A stretch of 64,000 nt of DNA from Takakia lepidozioides (lineage: Eukaryota > Plantae > Bryophyta). The stretch spans positions 248,001 to 312,000 of the forward strand of contig CM060734.1 in the NCBI GenBank assembly GCA_030704615.1. The letters run 5' to 3'. Positions 19,740 through 52,500 of this stretch are shown here, in pieces. The notes under the pieces are model-generated. The model saw only the letters and a list, made by a program, of their open reading frames with translations, did no database searches and was not told the DNA's origin. The position numbers were made by a program, and so were the translations under genes. How positions within the stretch are numbered: position 1 is the stretch's first letter; each line of letters begins with the position of its first letter.

Positions 19740-22700
19740 TATTTCTTGGTAGCCTTTTAACTTGTTAATATTAATTCGTCCCACGAATTCTTGTTCCAAG
19801 GTCTGTAAATCAACAGTTCCATGTCATGTACCCTTTTGATTTGAAAGGTCCCATCCATGGCATTTTCAATTTTCCGCCCAGTTTGATCTTCGTGATTTTT
19901 GGTAACCCCACAAACAATGTCCCCGTCCTGGAAAGATTTCTCTTTCCCTTTGGATATTCTTTTTTCTTCGTTGTTCTTGAATTCGTGCCATGTTATCTGC
20001 GGCGTCTGCCCGAACTCCTTCCAGGTGGAATAACTCATATTCCCTAACTCGTAGAGATTCTTCTAAAACCCATCGTTCATGAGTTCCGGTTCGTAGTGTG
20101 GGTATCATACATTCAATGGGTAATAGTGCCTCTGCTCCATACACCAGTAGAAATGGTGTATGTTTTGTGGTCACCTTGTGATGTCCTGAATGCCCATAGT
20201 GTTGTGTTCAATTTGGTGTCCCAATCTGTACGATTGGCATTTACTATCTTGGTTAAGATAGTGCATAATATCTTGTGGGTAGATTCGGCCTGGCCATTTC
20301 CTTGGGGATAGTAAGCAGTACTCTTGTGATGTACGATCATAAACTCCTCCGTCAAGCATTTTATGGCATCATTTATAAAATGTGATCCCTGATCACTGAC
20401 GAATTCCAGTGGGCAACCAAATCGTGTGATGATGTTTTCATATAAGAATTTGGCTATCGATCTGGCAGTGTTGTCTCTTAGTGCCTTGGCCTCTACCCAT
20501 TTGGTAGTGTAGTCAGTGGCTGTGAGGATGTATTGGTTCTGTGTGTACCTTGCTGGAGGTTTAATGGGCCCCACAAAGTCTAGCCCCCATCGCTGAAATG
20601 GTTCTGTTGGTAGTATTGGGTGCATAGTACCCTTCCCAGTTCGTTCTACTGGTCCCATCCTTTGGCAAACATCACACTGTTGACAGTGTTCATAAGTGTC
20701 TCCAAATACAGTAGGCCACCAGTAACCTGCTAATAATATCTTCTTTGCTGCCAGGTCTGAACTGAAGTGTCCTCCTGCAATTCCTTCGTGTAGTTCTTGC
20801 ATACTGTTTTGGCTTGCTCTTTGTTTACACATCTTCTCATTATGGAGTCAATTCCTCTTTTGTACAGAATCCCTTTGATTACTGTGTATGGCTTGCTTTT
20901 CATTGAAAGCTTTCTCATGTCATCTTTGGTGTAGTCTTCAGGAAATTTTCCTGTGTTCAGATAGTATTTGATTGGCCATTGCCAATCATCTTGATCTTGA
21001 TTCTGAAAGTCTTCTGATTCTTCCTTGGTAACTGTATACGCTCCAATACTGATATTGGCCAATTCTTGATTGTTTGTTTCTTCGTTTTCCTTGTCATCTT
21101 CTTCTTCTGGATCTGGCTCTTCCTCAATAATAGGTCCTTCATCAAGAGGTTCATCTTCATCTGATGAGTCCTCTTCTTCATCAGTGTCATCCATGAGTTT
21201 AAGAGCATCTGGAAGGTCATAGTCTCCTTGAAACATTCCCAGAGCGTCTATAGGATCTATCTCTTCATCTGGTGGGTTGAACAGCAAACAGAAATGCGTC
21301 GGGAAGTTGATCCTCTAACCCGTGGCTGGTTCTCCTCTAGTAATCCTTGACAGATGATCTGATGTAACATGTAATCTCCCTGGTTTATGAACAACTTCAA
21401 AATCATACTCATGAAGAAGTAATAACCATCGAGCAACCCTGCCACTAGCTAGTGGTCGATTTGCTAAATGAACTAGAGCCTGATGATCAACAATAAACTT
21501 AAAGCGATTGCCAAGTAAATAATGCCAAAACTTTTGAACAGCATAAATCATTTCCAATGCTTCCCTTTCTGTGGTGCTATAGTTCTGCTCGGCTGCTGTC
21601 AACAATCTGCTTGCATAATAGATTGGTGAATCTATTGTGCCTGTCACATTCTGAGCTAAAACTGCTCCCAAAGCAGTGCCCGATGCATCATTGTGTACAT
21701 GAAATGGTAAATCCCATCTTGGATTTATCAGAATTGGTGCTACCGTGAGTGCCCTTTTTAGTGAATCGAATGATTCCTGGCAAGCTGGAGACCATCGGTA
21801 TTCGACATCTTGCTTCAGCAGTCTATAGACTGGTGTTGCTCTGTGAGCATATTTGTCAATGTACCTTCTGTAATAGCTCGTCTGTCCCAGAAATCTCTTA
21901 AGTTTCTTGGGATTTTCTGGTGGTGGTATTTTCTAGATAACCTCCACTTTCTTTGGATCCACCAGAATTCCATGTTGGCACACAATGTGTCCCAACAATA
22001 ATCCTTAATTCACACAAAATGTACATTTTTCCGGATTGAGACTTACTCCATTGTTTCTGCAGGCTTGTAGGCAAAGTTTTAACTGTGCCAAGTTTTGGAT
22101 TTCTGTCCGAAGACACTGAAATCATCCAAAAATACCTGCATAAAATTGTTGAGATAATTCTTGAATATCTCAGATATTGCTCGCTGAAATGTAGCTGGTG
22201 CGTTGCAAAGTCCAAATGGCATGATTTTGTAAGCATAGGCTCCCCATTCAGTGATGAATGCGGTCTTTTCTCGGTCTTCTTCTGCCATCTGCACCTGATT
22301 GTACCTACTAAACCCATCCATGAATGAGTACATCTCATGTCCGGCCACTGTGTCCAACACTATTTCGGTGAAAGGTAGTGGAAATGGGTCTTTCTTGGTT
22401 CCTACATTTAACTTGCGGTAGTCCACACATACTCGTAGTTTTCCATTTTTCTTGGGTACTATCACAATGGGCGATAACCATTGTGGTGTCTCTACTGGGT
22501 ATATGAATCCTGCATCCAGTAATTTCTTGATTTCTTCCCAAACTTTAGCTGCATAGTTGGGGTTCATTCTGTAACGGTTCTGACGAATTGGTTTTGTGTC
22601 AACTTCCAATTCAATTCGGTGCTGACAGATATTAGAAGGTATACCCTTCAAATCTTTGTAGTTCCAGGCAAATACATCCTTGTATTCAGCGAATAATGCA

Positions 22701-23520
22701 GTAGCTTCTTGTAGAAATGATTCTTCAAGACCTGCACTTACTCGTATTATCTGTGGTTCTTCCACTGTTCCCAGATTCACTTGAATCAATTGAGTTTCTT
22801 CCGTTACTGTCCATCCTGCAATCTCTTGTCCGATGGTTGCAATCTTGGCAGGTACTTCACTGATTTTAATGTCCTCTTCCCTTTCTTGATAGAAACGGGC
22901 AGGGTGTTGAGGTGTGTCCATAGCTTCTTCCTTCGGATCTTCCGTTCTCGAAGTATTTGGTTCTCCTTGGGTGTTCACCATGTGACATCCCACTGTTGTG
23001 GTATGCTTGACCACTAATTGCCCAATAGGTTCCAATTGTGGATGTGCTGCATATATTGTGGCTTCTTCTTCAACTGATAGTCCACTGGACCAATCATACT
23101 CTTCCACTATGCAAGGTCATTTCTCTCGTGGAATGGTACCTCGTTGCTTCGTAGTGATGGTGACTTGTTCTGATCCCTTTTTGATCGTGAGAGTCTGACT
23201 TCCCCAATCATGGTGTGATTGGGCTTGTGTTAACCATGGTCGGCCAAGTAGTAGCGAATATCCTTCTACCACATCCTCTATTCTGAGAATGGTTACTGAT
23301 ACTTCGTATACCAGTCCTACTACTTCCATTGCGAGTCGTCTGATGATACCCAATGGTTGCACTTTTTGTTGATCAGCCATTCGTACCGTGAATGGCGCAG
23401 GTTCCATGTGTCCCAATCCTAGTGACTTCTTCATCTTCTCTGTCATGATATTCACTCCGGATCCTCCATCGATGAGTACATCTGTTACCAGCTTCCGTCC
23501 AATACGTACTTGTATTGCGG
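19740..23520 (-). pseudogene. pol: F2 pol: aspartic protease, RT, RNase H, integrase
   Basis: IDGGSGVNI; LRVCVDYRKLN; MPFGLCNAPATFQ; FLDD; NYSTTEREAL; H-H-C-C zinc motif; WGLDF; SDQGSHF; NGQAES. Confidence 0.95.
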
Positions 23521-30765: not shown

Positions 30766-33700
30766 CCAAGAGAGAAGACTCCGGCCGAGGCCGGTGTAAC
30801 TAAGAGCCACTTCGCCTTGTGGCTACTGCCCCGTTTCGAGGGTGGGTCCTATATAAATATGACAGGTGTCCAGGGGATACCAAGTAACCGGGGGTATGAG
30901 GTACCTCTGGGTACCCAGGGGTACCGGAGATGGGATGGATTCGAGTTTCCGCTTATTGGTTATGATGGATGTGAGAGAGCGAAGTGTCGTAAGGTGGATG
31001 TCTTTAAAGCAAGTATGGATGGAGGTGGTGGGGATTTAAAATTATCTTGAAGTGTTGAGATACTGTCATTGTGTATGCCCCCTCTGGTGCCTGCGGAGAT
31101 GACGGAGAGTGGGCCCGTGGCCCACCCTCATCGGCGAATAGCAAGGATAAGCGGAGTGTATTTTTGGCGCTTCTTGAGGATGGAGGTGTGCGGGAAGTGG
31201 TCATGGCAGTACGTGAATTTGATGAAGTGTATGATTAGTGGTGGGGTAGGAGTAGAGGGTGGAAGGGCGTTGGTGGGAAGTCCCTGAACTAAGAGGATGT
31301 TCGGGCATAGCCTAGCGGGACATGTGCATGTAGCATGGGGTTGGAAAATACAGGGTAATAGCCAGGATGGTACTGTATGGTCTGGGGGGTCTACCTTGGT
31401 AAGTGCCAGCATTGATGAGTGAGAACCATCTAGTTTCTTTATGTCGTTGTAATAGTTTGTGGATGTGTCATACAGCTTGATTGTGCCTCGCGATACGAAG
31501 GCCATGCAAGACTGGGTGGGGGCATTTATTGAGGATATGTGGCCAAGTGTCAATTACTGCACGTATATGGGAGCAGAGGGGGTAGTGTGGGGATGAAAAA
31601 ATGGTTGGCCAGAAGGTATGCTTACGCTGGTGCCCTATATACTGGGCAAATCTAAGCTTAAGTGTTTGTTTGATTTGTGCGTCGGAAGCGGCTTTAGTGT
31701 GTCAGAAGTGGTTGGACAGTTTATGATGAAGTACTATGGAATGTGTCCATTTTTGGATATGTTGTTTGGTGTGACTGAGAGATGTAGCGGCTTGTTTGTT
31801 GGCTTCTTTAGAGAGAGTAGAGCGGAGGTTACGAATAGGTTTAGGACGTTCGGGGGGCTTGGAATTGGATGTATTAGCCAGAAAGGGTGCATATGTGTAG
31901 TGTGGATGGGGTCTGTGGGGGGTTCTACTGGGGGTTTGGAGGCCCCTAGTTGGGCAAGGAGGTCAGCCTCCTCGTTCCCGTTGATTCCGGTATGTGAGCG
32001 TACTTTAAGAAATTGAATGGGTTGGTTGATTGAGATGGCTAAAGTGATGATTGCTGAGATCTGGGTGGTGATGGTGGGAGGATGGGCTGGCTATGTGGTT
32101 TCGCAGGAGAAATAGCAAAGTTAAGTTGTCTGTAAAAATGTAGTATGGTGAGGGGAATGCGTGTAGCTGGGAGAGGGCTTCGTAGATGGCCATAAGTTCG
32201 GCACGTAGTATGGTTGCGGGGCTCGGAAGTCAGTGGGCTGTACCAGTGTTAGTGGCCGCGTGGTAGACTCCATATATTCCGGCGCAGGAGCCAGCTTGGG
32301 AGCGATCTGTGTAGTGTGCATGTGCTGAGGGGTATTTTAAAGAGGTAGGGCCTAGATGAATTGGAGGTGCTCCAACATAGGTGATATTGAGTGACGGGAT
32401 GGGGCGGGGAGGGGTCGGAATCCATGTTTTGTTTGTTTTTGGTTTGTATGGGGATCGAGATGGGGTGTATAAAGGTGGCGTTGGAAAGGATGTGATAGCC
32501 ATGACAGTAAAAGTTTAAGGTGGGTAGAGAAGTCTATAGGTATATAGGTGTGGGAAGCGTTGTGGACTAACAAGATTAGGGTTAGAGTGGGTTCTTTGTG
32601 CCGTAGGTATTTAGGGAAGGGTGGGTTGCGTATGTATCAAAGTTGTTTGGGTTCAATGGCCACCAAAGGAGTAACGTCAAGAGGGAGTGGTAGAAGGGGG
32701 TGGTGATGGTCAGGCATTTTTTGTTGAGTTAGGATGATGATGGTTGAGGTGGAAGGGCAGGAGTGTGTAGCCTGGCGGGCCCATTGAAGGGCCTCGTGTG
32801 CAAGTGGCCCTGTGGGCGGGTGAGCGAGGCCTCCTCCTGTCCATGTGTGCTGGGTAGCGGTTCCTAAAGCATCGAATATACGGTCACGTGGATGTGGGCT
32901 GTTGTATGTGGAGAGCTCCATGGGGCAGGTTAGTGGGCTGGACTAATATGAATGAGTCAACTGAAATGAGGCGATGAGGAGTTTGAGGATGTCTGAGGGG
33001 AGGGTAGTATGGGAGTAGGCTTGCGCCTGTTTGTTGAGGTTACGAGGCTTCTTAGTAGGGGTATCGCAGGTAGGTATCGGTTAAGAAGCCAGCTGACCTC
33101 TGTGGCAAAGTCTTGTTTTGGAGGCTGTAGCTGGCTATTCTGTGTGTCAGAGGTGGAATATTTATACCAAAACCAGGCAAGCCGGACATTGGGAATGGAT
33201 CCGGAAAAACTACCGTTGATTGTGTAAATGTTGGATTGTGAGGTGTTGGGGCATATTAATGGGTGGCCGGGCATAATATCTTTGTCTGGGTTGCATTCGG
33301 TGATGTGTATTTGTATATTAGGAGTGGCTAGTGGTTGGCCGATGTAGCGGGTGTTAGTGGGTTGGGTTTGCGAGACATGATGTTGGTGGGTGTGCCTTAC
33401 ATAGGTGGTGTTTGTGGTTTTGTGGAATCTGATGAGGAGAGTGCGGTTATGAACCGGGTCGCAGTCGTCATGTGATCCAAAGAGGTCGTCTTCAATTTGC
33501 CATGTGTTATCTTTTGCTGGGAATCCCTCCCATTTACACAAATAGTATGTATCAACACATATCGCTCCGAAGGTGTCAAGTGATGTTTGGGTTTTGATGC
33601 CGAGGATAGCTTCAATGACGAAGGCCTTGGGGTGGTCTGGGTCTGGTAGGTGGGGGTACGGTGGAGGAGTGGGCGACAATTGGGATATAGGGGGTGATTG

Positions 33701-35510
33701 TTGATGTGTGTTAGGTGATGTCGGTGACATACAGGGAGGTGCGGTGAGGGGGGGTGGGAGGGGGGGGGGGGGGGGGGGGGGTATAGACTGGGGGGTTTTG
33801 AGATGCTTTAAGTAGTTGTAGTGTTGATGGGGCTGGTGCTGTTCTGAATTCCGGGAGGAGGTCTTGGATATTGTGCGGGTAGAGCTTGCATGGCATATCA
33901 CATTGTAAGGTGCAGGATGCAGATGGGTGGCAAAAGATGAGACGCAGATGGAGTAGGTAGCGGCGTGTCTTAATCGTGGCCCGTGAGTGTTTTAAGGTGA
34001 ATTGACTTGAGGTTAGGAGCCGGTGTCCATCCGCAGTGGTGAGTTGGGCAAGGTTAGTGATATGTCGAGCTTTGAAGTAGGCGAGGATGTGTTTTTTCTG
34101 TTTAGGATGCGAGTTTTCAAATTGTGAGGAAGAGGGGCTATTGTTCCATGCGCGTTCAAGTGGTGATATAGAGGTGGGATAGCCAGGAAGATCAGTTTGG
34201 ATGCTTATTTTCATTTGGCGCAGGAGACAGAGGGTGCGGGCGGTGGGTGAGTGGAGGCAAGATTGGGGGTGGGGTGGGGAGGGAGTATAGCCCGTTGTAT
34301 TTGGAGGCAAGGTGCTTGAGTAGTCCTTGGAAAATGAGCCCTAGACGACCCGGGTCGTTGAGGGCTTCTAGGAGTTGTGTACCAAGAGTGCGGGCATATG
34401 AGATAATAAGAGGAGTGGATCCTATGCCATAATTGTCTTGGGGGAGCTGAGTGAGGACGTTGAGGGTACTGGTAGGTAATCCACATATACGTTTGGTGAG
34501 TTGGATAATATTTTTGTCCAATTGTCTAATGTCAGGCAGGGGAAAGGGGGGTGCATGAAAGGCGTATTGGATTTGTGGATGGAGGATTTGTTGGATGATA
34601 GCTAGGTTGGGACGAATGGAAATGGGGGATTTGAGAAGGGCTAGGCTCTTGTTGTTTAGTTTAGAAAGAGTTGTTTGCTTTTGGATGTTCTGGAGGTAAG
34701 CGATGGGACTAGTTGGATGCCTAGGTATGTGTAGGGTTCATCTGGACCTAAGAATGGAAAAGGTTTTTGTTGGTAACGGATGTGGAGCTTGCAGTGGGAG
34801 GCGATCGTAGATTTAGTGAATTTGCTGTTATGTGTGGCTGCAGTGACCGCACATTTGTGAAGACTCAGTTCCATGCCTGACCATTGATTAAAGCGGGAGA
34901 GTTTATCGACCTTGCGGTTGAGATGTTGTGGCTTGTGTGCTAGGATAGCGAGGTCGTCTGCGTAAGCGGCTGCGGATATTTTGTTTGTAGACATTTTGTA
35001 TTGGTATCCTAAGTTGCCTCGGGCGAGCCATCTTAGTAATGGTTCAAGGAAGATAATAAAGAGATAGAGGCTCAGCGTGTCCCCTTGGATGGTGCCGCGT
35101 AGGATGGGAATTGGGGGGGTGGAGCCATAGTAGGAACCAGAATATTTTGTGGTGTTGTTGGTATAGATGTTACCGATGAGTTGGATGGCGTCGGTGGGGT
35201 AACCTAGATCTGACATGATGGCCAATAATCTAGGGTGGTCCAGAGAGCCGAAGGCGTTTTTGAAGTTGATATAGAGGAGGTAGATGTCTTGTTTGGTAAG
35301 CTTAGCATCTTCTAGGGCGGGGATAACGTATTGTATCGGACGGATTGTGCTTCGTGTGGCCCGGAATCCTTCTTGGGGGTCGCTTAAAATCTGGTGTTGT
35401 TCTCCGTAATTAGACAACATCCTTGTTAGGGTACTGGTGAATAATTTATATAGTGTTGGCGAGGGCTATTGGTCTGTAATTACTTAGAGCTGTTGGGTCA
35501 TCTTTTTTGA
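30766..35510 (-). mobile_element. Non-LTR retrotransposon copy 1 (Dualen/RandI-like): RT, chromodomain, PCIF1-like fold, RNase H, CCHC, RLE, 3' UTR; degenerate
   Basis: NYRPIAL, QEGFR, GTIQGDTLS, YADD; YLCKWEGF...NTW; SSPL...D.IF.ALG...AHPP; AELMAI...IFTD...GNEEAD; DTWPHILNKC...RHN; P(D>N)ILL...F.YCHD...KY.PL. Confidence 0.88.
34656..35510 (-). pseudogene. Non-LTR reverse transcriptase domain
   Basis: Canonical non-LTR RT motifs including YADD and YTYLG. Confidence 0.95.
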
Positions 35511-36709
35511 ACATGCCGTACGGGACACTTGGCCTCATATCCTTAGCAAATGTCCCCACCCAGTTATACATGGCCTTCGTATTGCTAGACATAACCAAGC
35601 CGTATGGCACATCCACAAACTACTCCAACGGCATAAGGAAACAAGATGATTCTCACTCATCAATGCAGGCACATACCAAGGCAGACCCCTAGATCATACA
35701 GTACCCACCTGGCTACTACCGTGCGCCTGCCATCCCCACGTTACCTGCACATGTCCTGCCAGACTTTGCCCTGATATTCTATTAGTCCAAGGACTCCCCA
35801 TAAATGTCTCCCCACCCTCTACTCCATCCCCATCACTCACCATCCACTTCATTGAATTTACATACTGTCATGACCGCTTCCCACACACCTCCATCCTTGA
35901 AAAACGTCAAAAGTACGCCCCGCTTATCCTCGGCTGGGCCACCGGCCCACTCTCCGTCATCTCCGCCGGCACCAGAGGTGGCATCCACAATGACAGCATT
36001 TCAACACTACAAGATAACTTCAAGCTCCCCACCACTTCCATTCATACATGCTTTAAGGACATCCACCTCACTACACTTCACTCCCTTACAGCTATCATAA
36101 CTAACAAACAGAAACTCAAAACCACCACATCCTTCGTACCTCAGGGTACCCCTGGGTACCCACGGGTACCCTAGGCACCCAAAGTACCTCATACCCCCGG
36201 TTACTAGGTGTCTCATAGACACTTGTCATCTTTTACAGGGCCCACCTCCGAAAGGGGGTAGTAGCCATAAGGCGAAGTGGCTCTTAGTTACGCCGGCTTC
36301 CGGAGTCTTCTCTCTCTCTCTTGGACATATGTGAACCCACCCTGAGGATATTATACATGAAATCTGGCTACAAGCTTCTGACTCATACACACCCACGGTC
36401 AATAACTGCTTGCACCCTAACCTACACCAACACAACTGTTTATGTAAAGTAAAACACTACCCATGGCACGATCTTGATGGCTTCTCACTTGAAAAGCGAG
36501 GCCGACCCAAAGACCACATCATTAACTTCTTTACCCAAGACCTATTCTACTCATGCCTAAAAGCTCTTTCTAAATCAAAAGTCACGGGCCCAGATCTAAT
36601 CCCCAACGCCATCCTACAAGCACTTCTCTCCTCTTAATTTTTTTTCAACTTTGCTACCTATTTCAACATATCCCACTCTCTTGGAAACATAGCCGAACCA
36701 TTCTATTTT
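35511..36709 (+). mobile_element. Inverted block 1: copy 2 3' part (CCHC end, RLE, 3' UTR to 36324) followed by copy 1 pre-RT region
   Basis: RLCPDILLVQG...IEFTYCHD; 3' UTR homologous to 30766-30900; KVTGPDLIPNAIL. Confidence 0.85.
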
Positions 36710-36890
36710 AGGGAGCAGTGAGGGGATGGAAACTGGGTAGGCCAGAAGGTATGTTTACGTTGGTGCCCCATATATTGGGCATATCTAGATTTGAGCGTTT
36801 GTCGGATTTGTGTGTCAGATGCGGCTTTGGTATTCCAAAAGTGATTGGACAATTTGTGGTGAAGTGTAGTGGAGTGTGTCCATTTTTGGA
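36710..36890 (-). mobile_element. LINE copy 2 segment between RNase H and CCHC
   Basis: Homologous to 31580-31760. Confidence 0.85.
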
Positions 36891-38501
36891 CAACTCGCAG
36901 ACGCCCGTTATGTCAGCCAACCCTTAGACACACCTAGAATCCAAATACATACCACAGAGTGCAACGCAGACAAAGATATTATGCATGGCCCCCTTATATG
37001 CCCCAAACCTCTACTATCCGATATCTACACACTTAATGGCAGCTTCGCCGGTTCCATTTCCAATATACGACTCACATGGCTCTGGTACAAATACTCCACC
37101 TCCACCACACATACCAACCTGCACCCGCCGAAACAAGACTTTGCCACGGAGATCACTTGGCTTCTCAATTGCTATATTAGCGATACCCCCACTAAGAAGC
37201 CGCGTACCCTCAGCAAACTATCTCAAGCCTGCTCCCATGTCACCCTCCCACACGACATACTAAAATTCCTCATCACCTCACTTAAACTAACGCACTCTTA
37301 TTATTCCAGCCCACTTACCTACCCCATGGAGCTCTCTTCATACGATAGCCCCCATCCCCAGGACTGTATATTTGGCGCATTAGGAGCCGCTACCGAGCAC
37401 ACATGGGCAGGAGGCGGCCTGGCCCACCCACCCGCAGGGCCTCTCGCTCACGAAGCCCTTCAATGGGCTAGGCATTCTCTACACTCCTCTCCCTCCACCT
37501 CCACCATTCTCATCCTAACCCAACAACAAACCCCTGAGCACAAACACCCCCTACTCCAATATCCTCCTGGTGTCACTCCATTAGTGGCCATTGAACCCAA
37601 ACAACTTCGATACGCACACAATTTACCCTTCCCAAAATATCTGCACCACAAAGAACCTACCCTCACAATCATCTTACTTATCCACAATGCCTCTTATACC
37701 CATGTACCTCCAGACTTCCTCGACAACCTCAAACTCCTCCTGACCGGCACTCGTGGCATGATGCTCACATCCCTCCCCCCCCCCCACCCATACACAACCC
37801 ACCCTATAGACCAAAACCACACAAAAACTGGACTCAGACCCCTCCTTGTCCCCTCTTCCAATCAATACCGCCCTAGTTAATGCACCCCCGATTCACATAG
37901 GCCCTATTACCCCTAAATATCCCCCAGCACACGCCCACTACACAGATGGCTCCCACTCCGGCGTCTATGCCGGCTATGGGGTATACCACGCCGCCACTAA
38001 CAAGGGAATCGCCCACCGGCTCCCAGGGCCGGCGACCATATTACATGCTGAACTTATGGCCATCTGCGAAGTCCTCTCTCAACTTAACACATTCCCTTCA
38101 CCATATTACATTTTCATAGACAGCCTAAACTCACTTTTCCTCCTACGTAACCACATTGCATGCCCATCCTCCCACCTCCACCATCCGGACCGTAATCTCA
38201 TCTCCGTAATCATAGCCCTCGCTATCCAATCAACAAACCCATTCAATTCCATAAAGTCAGATCACATACTGGAATCACCGGGAACGAGGAGGCTGACCTC
38301 CTTGCCCAACTGGGGGCTTCCCAACCCCCAATAGAACCTCCCGCAGACCCCATCCACATTGCACACACGTACCTTTTCTGGCTAATACACCCAATCCCAA
38401 GCCCTCCTGACCCTAAACCTATCCGTAACCTCCGATCTACACTATCTAAGGAAGCCAACAAACAAGCCACTGCATCTCTCAGTCGCACCAAACAATACAT
38501 C
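36891..38501 (+). pseudogene. Inverted block 2: LINE copy 2 PCIF1-like domain (37245-37690) and RNase H (37930-38320)
   Basis: LPHDILKFL...YYSSPLT...YDSPHPQDCIFGALG...GLAHPP; YTDGS, AELMAI, IFIDS, SHTGITGNEEAD. Confidence 0.85.
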
Positions 38502-39383
38502 GGTTTGTGAGGTGTGTTGTTGATGAGTGTGTGCTAGATAGTTGGTGTTAGTTGTTTTGTGAAAGTTTATGAGGAGTGTATGGTTATGTGCTGGGTCACA
38601 ATCATCATGCGATCCAAATAGGTCGTCTTCTATTTGCCAGGTGTTATCTTCTGCGGGAAATACCTCCCATTTACATAAGTAATAGGTGTCAATGTAGGTT
38701 GCGCCGTGGGGGTCGAGTGATGTTTGGGTTTTAATGCCAAGGATAGCCTCTATGACATAGGCTTCGGGGTGATCTGGGTCCGGAGGGTGGTGGCGAGTTT
38801 GTGGAGTGGTGGTTATTGTGGGGCTAGGGCGGGGTGTTTGTTGAGGTGTATTGGGTGGGGTGGTAGGTATGGCGGGAGGTATGGTGGGGGAGGGGGTGTG
38901 CGGGGAGGGGGTGTGCACGGAGGTGTGTGCTGGTGTATGAAGAGAGGCTTGAAGGAGTTGTAATATTGATGGGGCTGGGGCAGTTCTGAATTATGGGAGA
39001 AGATCTTGTTTGTTGTGTGGGTAGAGTGTGCAGGGGAGGTCGCATGTTAAGGTGCAGGAGGGAGATGGGTGGCAGAAAAGGGAGCGGAGGTGTAGTAAGT
39101 ATCGACGAGTTTTGATCGTGGCCCTGGAGTGCTTTAAGGTAAATTGGCATGGGGTTAAGAGTCGATTGCCGCTGGCTGTGGTGAGTTGGACCAGGTTAGT
39201 AATATGGCGGGCTTTAAAGTAAGCAAGGACATGGTTCTTTTGTTTAGGGTGTGAGACTTCAAATTGTGAAGAAAAGGGGCTGTTACGCCATGCGAGTGCA
39301 AGTGGGGATATAGAGGTGGGGTGTCCAGGGAGATCGGTATGAACGCTTATCTTCGTTTGGCGCAGGATGAGATGTAGGGCAAA
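38502..39383 (-). pseudogene. LINE copy 2 post-RT region and chromodomain (38560-38765)
   Basis: AYVIEAILG...YYLCKWEVFPAEDNTWQIEDDL; homologous to 33380-34225. Confidence 0.87.
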
Positions 39384-39900
39384 CGTCGCGCACCTCACTT
39401 CGGTAAGCTCCCCTTCACGTCATAGTTACTTGCTTTGATGCGCGCGCCTAACTCCCAAACTGGCCGCCGGGCCAACTCGGAGCTTCGGCTGCTCACCGGG
39501 ACATAATGGTCCCCTTTTGCTCCTCCACAAGACCCTCGCTCACTTTGGGCCTAGTGGAAATTCCCTTTGGTTGTTGGCAGACTGGAACAGCTCCCCACAC
39601 CTTGGTCACTTTCCGGCTCGCACGCTTACTCACTAGGTTTTGGTCACAACGGGCTTGCACCGTTCTCGGGGTTACTACTCCCTACATGTACTTCTGTGAC
39701 TGTCCGCGGGGGTTTCACAAACAACATCGTCCTTTTATGGCAAACTACCACGAAGACCCTTGACTCCCGGTGATGAGTCGCGGTGAGTCTTGGCCCACCC
39801 ACCACGGCCCCAATGGACCTTGATGAGTCCCAAGACTCCCCACGACTCCCACCACAAGGTCTCCGCCCCATGGTGAGTCCTCTGCCACCCCCACTAAGAC
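39384..39900 (-). mobile_element. Partial chromovirus LTR in inverted orientation
   Basis: Diverged reverse complement of ~40110-40630. Confidence 0.88.
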
Positions 39901-40685
39901 TGTCGCGGCCCTTTGCCTTGAGGGCAGGGGGTCGGGACACACGAGGGGCTGCCCTTGTGGTGGGGGCAGCGGCAGCGATAGGTATGGGGGGGCTGAAGCA
40001 CCCTTGAGTGCCCAAGGCACTCAGGGAAGCGGAGGCGCTCATTAGGTGGAGCCCCGCACACCGGGTTGCGGTGGGGGTGGCTCCACAAGGGGTGGTGGTA
40101 GCTTAGCGGGACTTAGTGGGGGTGGCATAGGACTCACCATGGGGGCGGAGACCTCGTGGTGGGAGTCGTGGGGAGTCTTGGGACTCATCACGGTCCATAG
40201 GGGCCGTGGTGAGTGGGCCAAGACTCACCGCGACTCATCACCGGGAGTCGAGGGTTTTCGTGGTGGTTCGCCATAAAATGGCATGGCTGGTTGTGAAACC
40301 CCCGCAGACAGCTACAGAAGTATATATAAGGGGAGTAGTGACCCCGAGAACGGTGCAAGCCCGTTGGTGACCAAAAACTAGTGAGTAAGCGACCGAGCCG
40401 GAAAGCGACCAAAGAGTGGGGAGCTGTTCCGGACTACCATCTACCAAAAGGGAATTCGCCTAGTCCCAAATAGGTGGAGGGTTTAGTGGGAAGCAAAGGG
40501 GGACCGTTATGTCCCGGTGAGCAGCCGAAGCTCCAAGTTGGCCCGGGCGGCCAGGTTGGGAGTCAGGCGCGCGCATCAAAGCGAGTAACTATGACTTGAA
40601 GGGGAGCTTACCGAAGTGAGGTGCGCGACACTTTGTATCAGAGCTTAGAGTTCAGTACGCGATCGTCCTTGGGATTGGCCTCATC

Positions 40686-41770
40686 ATGGGGTCGGGCAAG
40701 CCAAAGCGAAAGCGGAACGGCCCAAAAGATGATGATCCTGGTGAGTCCGATGGGGGCGACGTGTCACCGAAGCGGCTGTTTGAGGAAGCGACGCAAGTTT
40801 CTGAAAGCGAGGCCGCTCAAGAGCGGGAGGAATCCGAGGAGTCGGAGCCCGAGGAATCCGTGAGAGCTCCGACCGACCAACAGATGCCTCCCATGCCGGC
40901 AGCCTTTTGGGAAGGGTTGTTGGCGCAGTTTGGCGGGACGTTGAAAGACGTGTTGAAGGCGGCTAATGCCACTTCCACTAAGACAAAGTTTAAGGTGAAG
41001 CCTAAGGAACCCGGCACCTTCGAGGGCGTCCGAAATCGGAAGGCACTCAACACCTGGCTCCTGGAGCTAGAGCATTACTTCCGGGCGGCCAAGTTGAGTG
41101 ACGAGGATCGGGTGGAAGTGGCTCCCACCTATTTGAGGGGCTATGCTCAACAATGGTGGCAGAAACGCCTTCACGACCGAGGCCCAAGCCCAGAAACCTT
41201 GAACTGGAGTGGGATCAAGGAATTGATGAAGAGACAGTTTGTGCCCCTCAACGCGTCATGGCTTGCTTGGGACAAGATGAGGAATTTGAAGCAAACAGAT
41301 GACATTCGGGGGTATGTCCAGGCTTTCAATGTGCTGTTGCTCAAAGTCGCGGACATGGCAGAACCAAAATGGTCTTCAACTTTGTGGCGGGACTGGCCCC
41401 ATGGGCCAGGCGGAAGTTGGAAGAGAAGCCACCCAAGACTTTGAACGAGGCAATTGAGAGGGCTGAATGTTTCTCGGATGTCCCTAGGGGTGAGAGACAA
41501 GGCCGTACGGAGCTGAACCACAAGAAGACCCGGCGGGAAGGTGACTCCTCCTGACCGGAAAAGAAGTGGGATAGGCCACGCGGCGACAATGGCACGTGGA
41601 AATCAAAGGGAGGGCCTTCACACGTCAAGGCGGCACCCGGTGCTTCGAAAGGAAAAGCGGGTGGAGCGGCTTATGGCGGACAGAAGGCGACCTTTGATGG
41701 AGTGTGTTTCAATTGCGGGGAGCCCGGGCACATGGCCAAGAAGTGCACAAAACCTCGACAATTGAACATG
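40686..41770 (+). pseudogene. gag: Chromovirus gag with CCHC knuckle (frameshifted)
   Basis: PGTFEG...WLLELEHYF...YLRGYAQQWW...LKQ; CFNCGEPGHMAKKC. Confidence 0.9.
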
Positions 41771-41899
41771 ACTCGGGCAACCACGGAGCTGTCGGAAGAT
41801 ACCATCAGTCGCTTGGTGGAAGCGGTGGTCGCCAGGACTTGCAAGGTAGGCAACTATTCTTGTGAGTTGTATCAGGAAACTGGCGCCCAGCGTAAAGGG

Positions 41900-44800
41900 A
41901 GTCAATTATTGTTCGTGGATGGGATAATATCCGGAACTAACGTGTCGTTGTGGGTGGACACAGGAGCGTCGCACTCCTTCATGACGCCGGCGGCAGCGCG
42001 AAAGTTGGGACTCCCGACAAGTGACGTGGGGGCCTCTATTGAGGTGCGTTCTGCCAAAGGAAAACCACAGTTGGCGACAAGGTTGGCGTTTGATGTTCCT
42101 CTTCAACTGGGGAGTTGGGAGGGACGTGAGAACTTCACCATCTGCGAGATCGATGGAGTGGATCTCATTTTGGGGATGACCTTTTTGAGCAAATCCGGAG
42201 CGGTCATAGATGGCCGCAAGAGAGTAGTCACGCTGCCATGTGGGAATGGTGGCGAGGTTTTACGAGTGTCGGAAATGCCCAAATCCGTGGGAGGGCGAAT
42301 AAACCTTCTGTCAGCAAAGGAGTGGGCCGTGGAGGAGGCACACGAGCCCCAATTTTGCTTTACATTAGAGAAGTGAAAGGAGAAGGCGATGGGGAGCCGA
42401 GCCCAGATTGGATCAATGGGATTTTGGAGAAATACCAGGATGTGATGCCGGAGGATTTACGAAGCGGCTTGCCACCGCGAAGAGGAGTTGACCACAAGAT
42501 TGAGGTGATACCGGGATCGGAACCGCCTGCCAAGGCGCCCTACCGGTTGATCCACAGAGAGTTGGTCGAGCTGAAGACTCAGCTCAAGGATCTAATGTCA
42601 AAGGGGTACATCCGGCCGAGTAAGTCACCTTACGGAGCCCCGGTGCTATTTGCAGATAAAAAGGATGGGACTCTGCGGATGTGTGTCGATTACAGGGCTC
42701 TGAATAAGGTGACTATCAAAAACCGGTACCCTTTGCCAAGGATCGACGACCTTTTCGATCGGTTGGCAGGAGCGAAGTATTTCAGCCGGATCGATCTTGC
42801 GCTCCGGCTATCATCAAATTCGAGTGGCGGAAGGAGATGAGGAGAAGACCGCGTGCAGGACAAGGTATGGTTCATATGAGTTCTTGGTGATGCCTTTTGG
42901 GCTCACCAATGCACCAGCGACATTTAGCACGCTGATGAACAGCCTTTTACAGGAGTGGTTGGATGACTTTGTGATCGTGTACATCGACGACATCTTGGTG
43001 TATTCGAAAACAAAGGAGGAGCACCTGGAGCACCTCAAAAGGGTGTTCCAGAAATTGCGAGAAGGGAAGCTGTATGCCGAAGCTTCAAAGTGCGAATTCG
43101 GGGTCACAAAAGTGGAGTTCCTGGGGCATGTGATTACACAGGATGGGATCAAAATGGATGACAGAAAGGTGAGGGCGATCTTGGACTGGGAGCCTCCGAC
43201 TTCGGTCCCGGGAGTGCGATCCTTCCTAGGACTCGCCTCCTATTACCGGAAGTATGTGAGAAATTTTGCCAAGATTGCGGGGCCGCTGTCAGACCTTCTG
43301 TGTAAATCTAAAGTCTGGGCATGGAACACCTTTTGTGGCCAAGCTTTTGCTGAATTGAAGCAGCGGATGGCGGAAGCTCCAGTCTTGAAAATCCCGGAGT
43401 TCGATCGTCCGTTCGAGATACATACAGATGCGTCGGACTTCGCGATTGGGGGTGTACTGATGCAAGATGGACGTCCAGTGGCTTACGAAAGTAAGAAACT
43501 GAATGAAGTGGAGCGACGGTGGCCGACGCACGAGAAAGAGATGAAGGTGGTGGTGCATTGTCTTGAGCTTTGGCGCCACTATGTTGGTTCCAACCCAGTG
43601 AAGGTGTTCACGGACAATGTCACGGTGAAGTATTTTGCCACGCAGCCCAAGTTGTCCCCAAAACAACTTAGGTGGCAAGATACTTTGGCGGTGTTCGACG
43701 TGGATATCCAGTACAAACCGGGACGAGACAACGTGGTGGCCGATGCTTTAAGTAGAAAGCAGCAGCTCTTGTTGGTGTACAAGGGCGAGACGGCGCTCCA
43801 AAGGAAGATCCGGAAGGCTTGCCGGAAGGATGAGCTGGCAAAGTCCGTGATGCAGGACTTGAGGAAGGGGGGTAAATCGCAGTCCCACTTGCAAAATGGA
43901 CTGCTCCGGTATAAGCAAAAACGTCTCTACGTGCCGAAGGGAGGGATCAGAGATAGTCTCTTGAGAGAATGTCATGATAGCCCGCTTGCGGGCCACGGCG
44001 GAGCCAAGCGCACTACGGCACTCTTGAAGAAAGAGTATTTCTGGCCCAAACTGAGGCAGGAAGCAGAGGAGTATGTCAAGACATGCACCACATGCCAACA
44101 AAACCGGAGCGAGTACAAAAAGCAAGCGGGGCTGTTACAACCTTTGCCAATTCCAGAAGGGACTTGGGAAAGCGTCTCGATGGATTTCATGACTGCTATG
44201 CCGCTGTCAAAAGGATTCGATGCAATCATGGTGGTGGTGGATAGGTTCAGTAAAATGGGCCATTTCATCCCCACCAAGGAGACGGCAACGGCGCAGGAGA
44301 CAGGGCGACTTTACTTCGCCCACGTCTTAAAACATCATGGAGTCCCGAAGGATATTGTCTCGGACCGCGATCCAAAGTTTACGAGTAAATTTTGGAGGGC
44401 ACTTTGGAAGAAGATGGGGACGAGGCTGAAGATGAGCACCGCCTTCCGACCTACGACCGACGGCCAAACAGAAAGGGTGAATTCCGTAGTGAAGCAGATC
44501 TTGCTGAATTACGTGTCGGCAGACCAAACAGACTGGGTGGAACACTTAGACACGGCAGAGTTCTGTTATAATAACACAGAACACTCCGCAACGGGAGTTT
44601 CCCCTTTCGTATTGGTCTATGGAAAAGCACCTCTGGTGCCGACAAGTTGGGCCGCCCAGGACGTTGAGGAACCGGCAGTAGCGGCGGTACTGGAAGAACG
44701 CGAGCGTTTGTTGAAGCTCGCAAAGTACAATATTGCCAAAGCTAGGAAACGGTATGAAAGGCAGGCGAATCGGAAGCGGAGGGAAGTGAAGTTTGAGGCA

Positions 44801-45247
44801 GGCACAGAGGTCTGGTTGAACATCAAGAATTTCCGACTACCTCCGGAAGTGAGTCCGAAGTTCGTACCTCCGTATGCGGGACCCTTTCGCATTCGGAAGG
44901 TTATGAATGAGGATGTGTATGAATTGGAGCTGCCGGCAAACAGCAAGGTGCACCCAGTATTCCATGTCTCCCTTTTGAAGCCTTACTTCAAAGATGAAGC
45001 GCGTCCGAATCGGCATCAAGTGTTGCGTCCGCCACCTATGCTTGTTGGATCATGAAAATGAACCGAGTACGAGGTGGAGGCAATACTTTAGTCGAGGAGG
45101 TTCAGGAACCGAGAAACGGAGTATCTCGTCAAATGGAAGGGCTATCATCATGTGGAGGCATCTTGGGTGCGTGCCTCAGAAATGGGAAACGCATCCGAGG
45201 CGGTTGCAGCTTTCGAAGGGCGACCTCAAAAGCGGAAGAAGCGTTGA
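41900..45247 (+). pseudogene. pol: Chromovirus pol: PR, RT, RNase H, integrase, chromodomain (a few frameshifts)
   Basis: VDTGASHSF; YIDD; TDASD; [16 protein letters not shown]; GPF; YEVEAIL...YLVKWKGY...ASW. Confidence 0.95.
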
Positions 45248-49051: not shown

Positions 49052-49578
49052 AAAGAGGACAAGAACGGCCGTCAAAAGGGATGAAAGGCGGGCCCATTAA
49101 TGAGTACGGAAAAAGGGAAACGGAACGAACGGCAAGTACAGAAAAGCGGAATTCTTGTCACATGTGTGATCCTAGTGGACTATCCAACAAGGAAAGTCCA
49201 CTAAAGAAGATAAAATCTAAAATCCAGTCACAGCGGATACAGCCAATAGAAAACCAGATAAAGGATCAAGAAAATGGAGGGAAATTGAGCGCAAGAGGCG
49301 GCGTCGTTCTGAGTAACGGGCGTCTCGACAGGACAGACCATCAATGCTATACCTTGGAAACTATGGAGGAACTAACAGACTATACGCTCGCAATATTACT
49401 TACGCAGTGGCATAGACACGAAAGGACAGAGCGGAGCTTTTCTCTTGAGCGATGCTTGCAAGCCCCGCAGGCTTACAAGAAATTACCCATAGCTTTCTGC
49501 GGCAACCATACGTTTATGCTTTGTGCACTACAGGCATTCCTACAGTTGTTACAGCCAAAACAGTCCGGTGAGTCTAAA

Positions 49579-52500
49579 ATGAAGAGAGTGAGAGGCATGG
49601 AGGAAATCAGGGTGAAGAGCACCACGATTCTGCAGAAACAAACAATTGCTACCCCACAGGCGATACAGATACTGGAGGAGCTGAGATTGCAAGGATTGCA
49701 AAGCCTAGATTGGACACTACACCATAGACAGTACATGTTACAATTTTTGCAGAACTTTGAGCCAAGGACAGGAACAACAACGGTGAAGGGAGTTGAATTA
49801 ATGATTACTCCCCTATACCTCCAGCAATTGTTTCGATTGCCAGCAGGTCAGGTGCATGTGGAGCAACATAGGGCAAGACTGCAAATAGAGGACTTATTCC
49901 AAGAAGGGAGTTTCTTTAAAACTCAGGGTTATGCTTGTACCAAAGCTGTGTACCCAGGGTTAAAAGAGGTAGGCCAGGTATTGAACGTTCTGATTGCCAT
50001 GAAACAGAACCAACAGTATTTGAGCAGATCCTTCACGGAGGAAATACTCAAAGGCCTGAAGGGACGAGAGGTACAATGGGCGGACATAATGTACAACGCA
50101 CTGGTAGAGGAGATGAAAAGATTACAAGGTACTACCGCAAAGTCTCCTATAATAGTGTCTGGCCCAATCATTGCTCAAATAATCCTTGATTCTGGCATAC
50201 TTAATGCGCAAGAAAGAAAGGAAATGGGAGTGTTTGAGCCAGCAACAACTGCAATGGAAGAGCAAGGCTCTTCACACAGTGAGGGTGGACTAGCAGGGCA
50301 ACCTGAGACTAAGAAGCAGAGACGGGGAAAGACTGTGGTGGCGAATCCACTGGCTTCACGGATTCCGCATGATAATGTTTCCCAAGCTCATGGCCAGGAA
50401 GGGGCACAGCAGCACAGAAAAATGCTATTACTGGAAGCAGGACCTTCAGAGAGGGAGGAGGAAGTTACTTCTGCATCACAACCATCACAGCCACTTGAAC
50501 GACTTGTCACAAGGTCACAAGTTATCCATGCAGCTCAACCAGAAATAATTGATTTGGAAAGTGAAGGGTTAGATATTCCAACTACAGAACAGATAGTGGC
50601 AGAAATAGAGAAGGGGGACCTTCTCTATGAATATTCTGGTCTGGTCAAGGAGACAGAAATCCCAGAGGTGCAACAGTTGCCCAAGGGAAATCCTGAGGTG
50701 CATATAATACACACACCTGTGTCGGAGGTACCACAGGCGGAAGGTCATGACACTGTAGCACCGGTGATAGATGAAGTAGTTCAGGAAGAAAATCCGGTGG
50801 GACAATGGCCTGAATGGTTAGTGAGACATCACACTGTTGAAGATCAGGAGGAACAGCAGCAACCTCACCATGATGACCCTCAACAGGCAATGCTGATGAG
50901 TTCCATAGGCAGGACACTTAATTTGTTGGGGACTTATGTCAAATCCCATGTTCCAATTACCCAATTGACAGCCTTGAAAGAGGAACTCAGGAAGGAGTTT
51001 GAGGCTCGACTTGCCACTGAGTGTGCAAACAAGGTCGATGAAGAGGTCACTCTCAAGATGAAGCACGACTTGGGAAATACAGAAATGGCTTTGCAATTGG
51101 CCAAGCAACAATTGATTGAGGCAGGCCTCGCGCAAGACCAGTTGCACGAAGCACATAAGCAATAGCTATACGAAATGCAGGTGCAGCATGAAAGCAAGTT
51201 GCAAGAACTGAATGCACTACATACGGAGTTGCAGACAGTGCATAACAGGATGGCGATACAATGTGCTACATTTACAACTATGCTTGACCAATCTACAAAA
51301 GAAATAAACAGTCAAGCGGAAAAATGTACGAAGGCAGAAGAAGAGAATGTTGAGCAAATGAAGCTCATTGTCGATATGAAGAATACAATCTGTCGCAATG
51401 AAGATACTTTCAAGCAATACAGGCAGATTGAAGCTGATCAAGAGAAGCACATCGTGGAGTTGCAACAAACCATCATGGCCAATAGAAATGAAATCGCGGT
51501 CAATAACAAGGCTTGGAAGGAAGCCAATAATCTACTTGCTGCTTATGCGCAATTGGTTGAACCTCAGGCGAAGCGCATGGAGGCTTTACAACAGCAGTTG
51601 GAATTGTACAAGCTAAGAGAGGAGCAAACTCTCAGGGGAACCACAAGCAACTTGGTGGATAACAGCCTTATGCAGGTCTGGTTAGCACAAGGGCCAGTAG
51701 AGGGCAAAGCACCACGGAAGCTCACCCAAAGCGAGATGAATGAGCTCAGGTTGCAGGTGCAGAACATTGCCACAACTACTATAGACAATGTCTATAGTAG
51801 GATAGCAGAGTTACAAGAGGATGTAGACGGACTCCAGACTCAAGTGGAAGACCTCACTTCAAACATCGACCAAAGAGTCTGTATCCCTCAGGAACAGCTA
51901 ATGGCTTCTTATTTACAAGCCAGAACTTTGGCTTTTCAGTCTTCACAGGAGGTGCAGGAGATGCCAATGATACAAGAGCCAGTACCACCACCACCACAAC
52001 AAGTCACTGTACCAGTAGCTGAACTTGTGGTTACTACAACCACACCACAGCCACCACAGCAGGAGGTATGGGGCAATGCCGCTTTTAACCCACCTAAAAC
52101 TCCAGCTGCAAGGGAGTACAGTAGGGCTATGATTATGCCCTTCAACCAAATTCCCATAATGTTGGATTTGGCTTGGAAAGAATTTAGTCCTCCGCAGTCA
52201 TTCGCACATTACTACCAAATCATGCGTATTTGGCTGCCAGTGGCAACTAGGACTAAAGTTCTTCCGAACAATCGACATATTGAAGATCATCACTTTGCAC
52301 AATACTGGCACGAGGCAGGTACCATGTTGAGGGAACTGATTGCTTTCCAGGTTGTACATGGACTCATTTATACCAAGACCAAGGAGATAGCAAGTATTGT
52401 CATGGGGCGGGTTATACTACGCTGCTTGTTTTCTGGTACGTTACCACATTGAGCAACAAAAGATGCAAACACGTTTTCTGAGTTATTCCAGTGGAGATCA

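Follow-up and report, generated by a model that had tools for sequence, protein, structure and literature searches.

The stretch analyzed here (the window) comprises 64,000 nucleotides of the bryophyte Takakia lepidozioides (assembly GCA_030704615.1, contig CM060734.1, positions 248,001 to 312,000 of the forward strand). Between 30.8 and 39.4 kb it consists of two copies, A and B, of one family of retrotransposons without long terminal repeats (non-LTR elements), or long interspersed nuclear elements (LINEs), with about 77% DNA identity to each other. Both carry a domain homologous to the methyltransferase domain of PCIF1/CAPAM, the cap-specific mRNA N6,2'-O-dimethyladenosine (m6Am) methyltransferase. 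Our best explanation, to which we assign a probability of about 0.6, is that these are two dead copies of a Dualen/RandI-type element in which the PCIF1-homologous domain was maintained by selection and is non-catalytic by canonical chemistry.

A first-pass annotation, made from the letters alone, had noted the resemblance to PCIF1 in both copies. Both stretches are indeed present, and in copy B the motifs LPHDILKFL, HSYYSSPLT, YDSPHPQDCIFGALG, WAGGGLAHPPAG and TIILLIHN are found at about 37245-37690; the quoted motifs stand at the given coordinates in copy A as well. The location given for the domain was right, but its start lies about 120 nt further upstream. Pfam PF12237 (PCIF1_WW) models the methyltransferase region of PCIF1, with a curated cut-off of 31.1 bits. 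The open reading frame (ORF) in the window scored 19.4 bits (E 8.7e-4) and thus stayed below this cut-off. A length-restricted homologue search returned a single match, the only close homologue P0001, a metagenomic protein of 444 aa with 44% identity that contains a chromodomain and a PF12237 match at 24.5 bits. Besides this search, we ran an exhaustive search with a family profile against 1.84 billion representative proteins. At E<=1e-3 it recovered 424 proteins, of which 129 also reached E<=1e-10. The family thus numbers 424 clusters or more (at 50% identity), most of them from metagenomes. PF12237 was matched by 63 of 100 aligned family segments at E<=0.01 (best E 3.2e-18), and the Dam profile (PF05869) by one of the 100 (best E 3.1e-4). 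Among 25 long members scanned whole, seven exceeded the curated cut-off with 53.7 (P0102), 51.7 (P0145), 49.4 (P0106), 45.9 (P0141), 44.5, 41.6 and 39.6 bits; 44.5 bits was the score of P0031 and P0122. When a profile of 100 family sequences was run against 177,635 PDB sequences (E<=10), only zebrafish and human PCIF1/CAPAM were matched (6IRX, E 4.3e-7; 6IRV, E 3e-5). The same comparison with a profile of three sequences returned nothing relevant.

The predicted fold points in the same direction. An AlphaFold2 model of window positions 37098-37877 reached a mean predicted local distance difference test (pLDDT) score of 82.3 and a predicted template modelling (pTM) score of 0.79. In a Foldseek search of the PDB with this model, the top six matches were all PCIF1 (E 1.3e-7 to 5.7e-5), followed by generic methyltransferases at E about 1e-2. 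VIA-align likewise placed six PCIF1 structures on top (Z 13.3-14.8, root-mean-square deviation 3.1-3.6 A, 179-195 residues). The best of these was 6IRW (Z 14.8, 3.4 A over 193 residues), the next fold was KsgA (Z 8.6), and no Dam enzyme was found among the top 50. In a comparison with models in the ESM Atlas, template modelling (TM) scores were 0.64-0.66 for PCIF1 clusters and 0.51-0.52 for Dam clusters, and 27 of 30 feature matches in the Atlas were PF12237 clusters. Thus, Pfam, the family profile, Foldseek, VIA-align and the ESM Atlas all bear out the proposed resemblance, and a Rossmann N6-adenine methyltransferase, PCIF1, is matched by profile as well as by structure. We regard as solid the homology between the LINE domain and the Rossmann methyltransferase domain of PCIF1/CAPAM.

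PCIF1 (PDB 6IRV-6IS0) is the best profile and structure match of the LINE domain, and the two have in common the N-terminal helix (F..L..RY), the S-P-L strand-loop, the D..FG loop and the position of motif IV. They differ in several respects. The ordered module of the LINE domain spans about 215 residues, compared to a PCIF1 core of roughly 480 residues, and the 193 aligned residues are scattered over residues 188-668 of the PCIF1 chain. Judging from the model, most of the helical cap-binding part of PCIF1 seems to be absent. The LINE domain also lacks the WW domain, for which no match was found in the window ORFs or in 26 relatives scanned whole (P0001 and the 25 long matches). Finally, the LINE domain is embedded in a retrotransposon polyprotein, and the NPPF motif of PCIF1 is replaced in it by HPPA (copy B) or HPPT (copy A).

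These two motifs stand where PCIF1 has its catalytic motif IV: the 100-sequence profile aligns HPPA and HPPT on NPPF, with A-H-P-P over A-N-P-P-F, as the first-pass annotation had read it. A survey of motif IV in 123 family segments, which that annotation had suggested, returned mostly H-P-x-x forms (about 70% of the family), a few N-P-E-Y and one H-P-P-F. H forms also occur in intact full-length ORFs, namely HPPF in P0106 (2146 aa) and HPPR in P0149 (2709 aa). Across the family, the most conserved residues are F92 (95%), W123 (93%), G93 (88%), W103 (88%), D89 (87%), P72 (83%), S71 (82%), P111 (82%) and H110 (72%); the A of A-H-P is conserved at 72%. The most conserved blocks align with PCIF1 motifs, i.e., the S-S-P-L strand-loop, D..F-G and A-H-P, while W103 and W123 are two family-specific tryptophans that flank motif IV. 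A quick maximum-likelihood tree (IQ-TREE) separates the family into two clades along a branch supported at 99% by the Shimodaira-Hasegawa-like approximate likelihood ratio test (SH-aLRT). In the clade of the window (40 rows), 33 of 40 rows have H together with a non-aromatic fourth residue. All N..Y forms fall in the other clade, as do the long intact ORFs and most of the H-plus-aromatic forms. The tree contains no cellular PCIF1 outgroup and was midpoint-rooted for drawing only, and we claim no direction, N to H or H to N.

The ratio of nonsynonymous to synonymous substitution rates (dN/dS) between copies A and B was 0.23 in the domain core, a rough figure calculated with stops treated as missing and with a dS of about 0.9. 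The PCIF1-like domain was therefore under purifying selection in the active lineages. Family conservation and this ratio together show that the domain is an integral and selected part of the element.

How such a domain works is less certain. The first-pass annotation had offered either altered chemistry or an inactive pseudo-enzyme. This is the right framing, and we lean towards the inactive form. The blocks corresponding to PCIF1 motifs that precede motif IV are kept. NPPF has given way to HPPA or HPPT, the aromatic residue is mostly gone in the clade of the window, and PCIF1 in which NPPF was mutated to APPA is catalytically inactive (PMC8452764); canonical adenine-N6 catalysis has therefore presumably been lost. 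The domain is probably a SAM (S-adenosylmethionine)- or nucleic-acid-binding module rather than a working adenine methylase. In the clade of the window, the shell and the pocket would have been kept and canonical adenine-N6 methylation lost. As a ligand-binding module, the domain may bind SAM and/or the RNA or the RNA:DNA intermediate of the element, and together with the chromodomain it could help the ribonucleoprotein to engage its template or chromatin target. The first-pass annotation had further suggested that the domain might mark or protect the RNA or cDNA of the element, which we regard as speculative. Several points weigh against this explanation. The conserved His-Pro and the other motif blocks fit a working, unusual active site equally well, and the stacking lost with the aromatic residue might be supplied by W103 or W123. 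Part of the motif variety is noise, since many of the family sequences were taken from copies in decay. The dN/dS of 0.23 is rough, at a dS of about 0.9 and with an extremely skewed composition. For every family member, activity or its loss is deduced from sequence and model, the presumed-RNA runs gave no RNA support for expression, and the assignment to Dualen/RandI is based on domain layout, not on a reverse transcriptase (RT) phylogeny with reference elements.

In one alternative, which we consider unlikely, the H-P-x-x domain does transfer methyl groups, by a non-canonical chemistry or to a non-canonical target. The histidine would then act in the role of the asparagine, with a conserved tryptophan for stacking, and the target could be the cap-adjacent adenosine of the element RNA, some other nucleophile or, while target-primed reverse transcription proceeds, the cDNA or an RNA:DNA hybrid. 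Such an enzyme would account for the conservation of the motif IV His (72%) and Pro (82%), for the blocks shared with PCIF1 that are kept across members only 22-45% identical, for the H forms in the intact full-length ORFs of P0106 and P0149, for the minority that keeps N-P-E-Y and for the dN/dS of 0.23. To our knowledge, however, there is no characterized amino-methyltransferase with His at the Asn position of motif IV, and the EPPL of METTL14 is a motif IV that is conserved yet inactive; both weigh against activity. So do the fourth residue of the motif, which is variable and mostly non-aromatic in the clade of the window, and the dead APPA mutant of PCIF1 (PMC8452764). The more elaborate version, in which the His-Pro motif IV and the two tryptophans form a LINE methyltransferase of new chemistry or target that is guided by the reader domain and methylates the capped RNA of its own element, or the RNA:DNA or cDNA intermediate where the element integrates, is a candidate that we judge somewhat less likely still. 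If it were true, the element would be the author of its own epigenetic or epitranscriptomic mark.

A different origin is conceivable as well: the domain could be a Dam-like (PF05869) methyltransferase of DIRS or LTR retrotransposons that was passed to a LINE. P0141 shows a weak Dam match (E 0.0017), one of the 100 aligned members matches Dam, the Dam clusters of the ESM Atlas reach TM scores of 0.51-0.52, and the DIRS1 domain has been put in the PCIF1 clade (PMC4738411), so that a deep kinship is possible. Against this stand 63 of 100 matches to PF12237 compared to one to Dam, a PDB profile search that returned PCIF1 alone, and the VIA-align result with PCIF1 in the top six places and no Dam in the top 50. 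Moreover, Asn-Pro-Pro is found in almost all sampled DAMs (bioRxiv 10.64898/2026.05.21.726589) instead of the H-P-x-x seen here, and we consider a Dam origin improbable. It is more improbable still, to a degree that we hardly reckon with it, that the resemblance to PCIF1 arose by chance or is what remains of a decaying domain, without a role in the element. The score of the window sequence (19.4 bits against a cut-off of 31.1 bits) and the pseudogene state of both copies would fit a relic, but the family has hundreds of members in which the domain is fixed between RT and RNase H, and the dN/dS of 0.23, the strong conservation of motifs and the specific fold match speak against it. We therefore favor the selected, probably non-catalytic module.

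The type of element was deduced from the relatives. The long ones encode in one ORF an apurinic/apyrimidinic endonuclease (APE), an RT, then either nothing, a PHD finger or a chromodomain, followed by the PCIF1-like domain, RNase H, a CCHC knuckle and an R2-type endonuclease. P0149 (2709 aa, on an 8.3-kb contig) matches Exo_endo_phos (APE) with E 3.7e-10, and P0106 (2146 aa, on an 8.6-kb contig) is preceded by an ORF1 of 281 aa. RT and RNase H are present in several relatives. In the approximately 280 residues past RNase H, the relatives share a nearly invariant C-x2-C...H-x4-C knuckle, followed by R-H-N, P-D and a conserved Glu. A model of this C-terminal region (pLDDT 81.6) resembles the zinc knuckle and restriction-like endonuclease (RLE) of the R2 protein, which Foldseek matched with E 1.5e-8 to 1.9e-4 and TMq 0.56-0.63; nothing else was found below 1e-2. 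APE and RLE in one protein are the defining layout of Dualen/RandI (PMC4640811, PMC5029228), and the relatives, with APE and an R2-type endonuclease in one ORF, therefore have this layout. The window copies, in which no APE is seen owing to their 5' truncation, fit a Dualen/RandI-type non-LTR retrotransposon as well, by domain layout rather than RT phylogeny, in line with what the first-pass annotation had guessed.

That annotation had also described a single polyprotein in which a methyl-lysine reader precedes the methyltransferase-like domain and RNase H. The order chromodomain, PCIF1-like domain, RNase H applies to copy A and to relatives such as P0001, but not to copy B, in which the segment is inverted. 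As to the reader, the chromodomains of the window copies have F/Y, W and F at the three aromatic cage positions (F, W and F in copy A), as judged by eye from the translations. The window copies and P0001 have a chromodomain; P0149, P0141 and P0146 have a PHD finger instead. P0106 gave no match to a reader domain, and neither did ten members in which 150-330 residues precede the PCIF1-like domain. The reader thus varies in the family, and the constant part among relatives is the PCIF1-like domain, which is always located just upstream of RNase H.

Related domains are known from other retroelements. Iyer, Zhang and Aravind (2016) placed the methyltransferase domain of DIRS1 in the PCIF1 clade and predicted it to be inactive (PMC4738411). 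In both DIRS1 and the LINE family, a PCIF1-related domain whose catalytic residues are degenerate lies beside RNase H in the polyprotein, and the function proposed for DIRS1, binding of the template RNA or mimicry of PCIF1, might by analogy apply to the LINE domain. However, DIRS1 is a tyrosine-recombinase element, unlike the APE/RLE LINE described here. DAM-TEs are LTR and DIRS retrotransposons that encode Dam-like domains and, in some cases, chromodomains; the survey that described these transposable elements used hmmsearch for Dam (DAM) at E<1e-5 and reported none in a non-LTR element, and heterologous methyltransferase activity was not detected (bioRxiv 10.64898/2026.05.21.726589). DAM-TEs and the LINE family are alike in joining a chromatin reader to a domain that resembles adenine methyltransferases, but they differ in domain family, motif and class of element. 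In particular, the DIRS domains match Pfam Dam (PF05869) and keep Asn-Pro-Pro (bioRxiv 10.64898/2026.05.21.726589), whereas the LINE family matches PF12237 and has H-P-x-x.

Dualen/RandI elements resemble the LINE family in their dual endonucleases (APE and CCHC/RLE), their RNase H and the gain of chromatin-related domains. The cryptophyte element Dualen-1_GCr contains SET, C48 peptidase, APE, RT, RNase H, CCHC and RLE (PMC5029228). The published descriptions of Dualen/RandI that were checked, Repbase aside, mention no PCIF1-like domain, no chromodomain and no PHD finger, and the literature on Dualen and methyltransferases yielded only the SET domain of the cryptophyte Dualen. A PCIF1-type domain in LINEs was not found in searchable papers, with Repbase and subscription papers outside the search. 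What appears new is a PCIF1-lineage domain in a LINE; already known were a PCIF1-clade domain in DIRS1, the Dam domains of DIRS and LTR elements and the SET domain of Dualen. Among cellular proteins, METTL14, the inactive partner of METTL3, combines a Rossmann amino-methyltransferase fold with a non-catalytic motif IV and serves as a nucleic-acid-binding scaffold. It belongs to the MT-A70 family and can be compared to the LINE domain by analogy only.

Retrotransposons with epigenetic tools of their own were known among DIRS and LTR elements (DNA methyltransferases (DNMT) and Dam) and in the cryptophyte Dualen (SET); this family adds LINEs as carriers and the PCIF1 lineage as a source of such tools. 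The natural series from the near-canonical N-P-E-Y via H-P-P-F/Y to H-P-x-N/D/T may help to understand when a retroelement keeps a writer and when it keeps only the binding shell. If any of the H forms were active, amino-methyltransferases would gain a catalytic motif that is new to them. There are also short algal proteins that were automatically named 'PCIF1 WW domain-containing protein (Fragment)'; such algal and metagenomic entries may be fragments of LINEs of this kind.

Both copies in the window are dead. They lie head-to-tail on the minus strand, and both are truncated at the 5' end. In copy A, the RT (34656-35420, minus strand; Pfam RVT_1, E 1.6e-22, profile positions 34-195 of 205) adjoins the 3' piece of copy B at about 35511, and the window contains neither the APE nor the RT N-terminus of this copy. 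The chromodomain follows at 33476-33622 (minus; Pfam Chromo, 30.4 bits with a cut-off of 25.1). The PCIF1-like methyltransferase-fold domain with the motif HPPT, at 32502-33130 (minus), was delimited by tblastn with the copy B ORF, P0001, P0002 and P0011 and by codon alignment. It shares 66% protein identity with the copy B ORF (tblastn) and is broken by one frameshift near 33060 and two in-frame stops. The RNase H (31955-32421, minus; tblastn with the copy B RNase H, P0002, P0011 and P0020) lies in a frame that differs from that of the preceding domain. A degenerate CCHC knuckle and R2-type RLE were found at 30925-31760 (minus) by alignment of relatives and tblastn with residues 549-703 of P0002. 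More frameshifts occur downstream of the PCIF1-like domain, and the 3' tail after the endonuclease reaches about 30787. In the copy A endonuclease (31128-31553, minus), the catalytic P-D is changed to P-N and the conserved Glu to Lys, both by G-to-A changes on the coding strand.

Copy B (35511-39400) has undergone two internal inversions, 35511-36709 and 36891-38501, which flank an un-inverted piece at 36710-36890 and whose breakpoints are exact against copy A. The linker distal to the RT and the chromodomain (38613-38759; Pfam Chromo, 27.5 bits) are located at 38502-39400 on the minus strand and form direct repeats of 74-77% with copy A. The inverted 1.6-kb segment (36891-38501, now plus) was recognized by its inverted repeats to copy A and by the Pfam matches PCIF1_WW and RNase_H; its nucleotide arms at 37180-37742 and, in copy A, at 32505-33067 are 77% complementary. 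It contains the intact PCIF1-like domain with the motif HPPA at about 37125-37745 (plus), inside a 334-aa ORF at 36876-37880, and the RNase H at 37852-38331 (plus; Pfam RNase_H) in a shifted frame. It is because of this inversion that the ORF is on the plus strand and the chromodomain of the same copy on the minus strand. The CCHC-knuckle region kept its original orientation (36709-36890, minus; tblastn with residues 431-489 of P0002 and 415-475 of P0011; direct repeat to copy A). The RLE region is again inverted (35524-36162, plus; inverted repeats and tblastn with residues 496-710 of P0002 and 484-689 of P0011, 45-50% identity), and the 3' tail after it reaches about 36300. Copy B is thus broken by 5' truncation, double inversion and a frameshift between the PCIF1-like domain and RNase H. 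Twin-priming-like events and later rearrangement are both possibilities for the origin of the inversions. The 36890/36891 junction is bridged without differences by a contig of DNA short reads.

Between the chromodomain and the PCIF1-like domain, copy A (33131-33475, minus), copy B (36891-37124, plus) and P0001 (residues about 60-135) share a conserved linker of about 80-110 residues with the blocks T-E-C-N-x-D-K-D-I and W-x-W-Y-K-Y. It has no Pfam match and a dN/dS of 0.15. The coding strand of the LINE (30800-39400) consists of about 38% C, 28% A, 21% T and 12% G, with a GC skew of up to 0.5. From this C-rich, G-poor coding strand result proteins rich in Pro, Thr, His and Ser. P0001, P0002 and P0011 are likewise biased, and the bias, being common to the metagenomic relatives, is therefore a lineage trait and not due to decay of the window copies.

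About 200 mostly diverged contigs of one DNA run fall on a 1.8-kb stretch of the LINE region, and the LINE family is therefore high-copy. Identical pieces were found in a run of a different study. In two presumed-RNA runs, no expression of the domain was seen, which is no evidence either way; the matches obtained there were limited to 46-63 nt, at under 90%, to an unrelated repeat piece at 36740-36802. This piece matches many contigs of the DNA run at very high summed depth and probably represents a short repeat of high copy number in its own right that lies embedded at this site.

Elsewhere in the window, no large ORF gave a Pfam match to a host gene, and two long adjacent ORFs at 49081-52452 (plus; 694 and 425 aa) had no Pfam match at E<=0.001. 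The neighborhood is dense in transposable elements. A further RT ORF is found at 22079-23107 (minus), and the LINE pair is adjoined by a Ty3/gypsy-type LTR retrotransposon at 40686-45055 (plus) with long open gag-like and pol ORFs, including an RT-RNase H-integrase ORF of 752 aa as judged from its translation. Between the LINE copy and the start of this element near 40686, positions 39385-40629 form a palindrome-like structure of about 1.2 kb that is composed of nested inverted repeats with arms of 87-190 nt and 80-94% complementarity.

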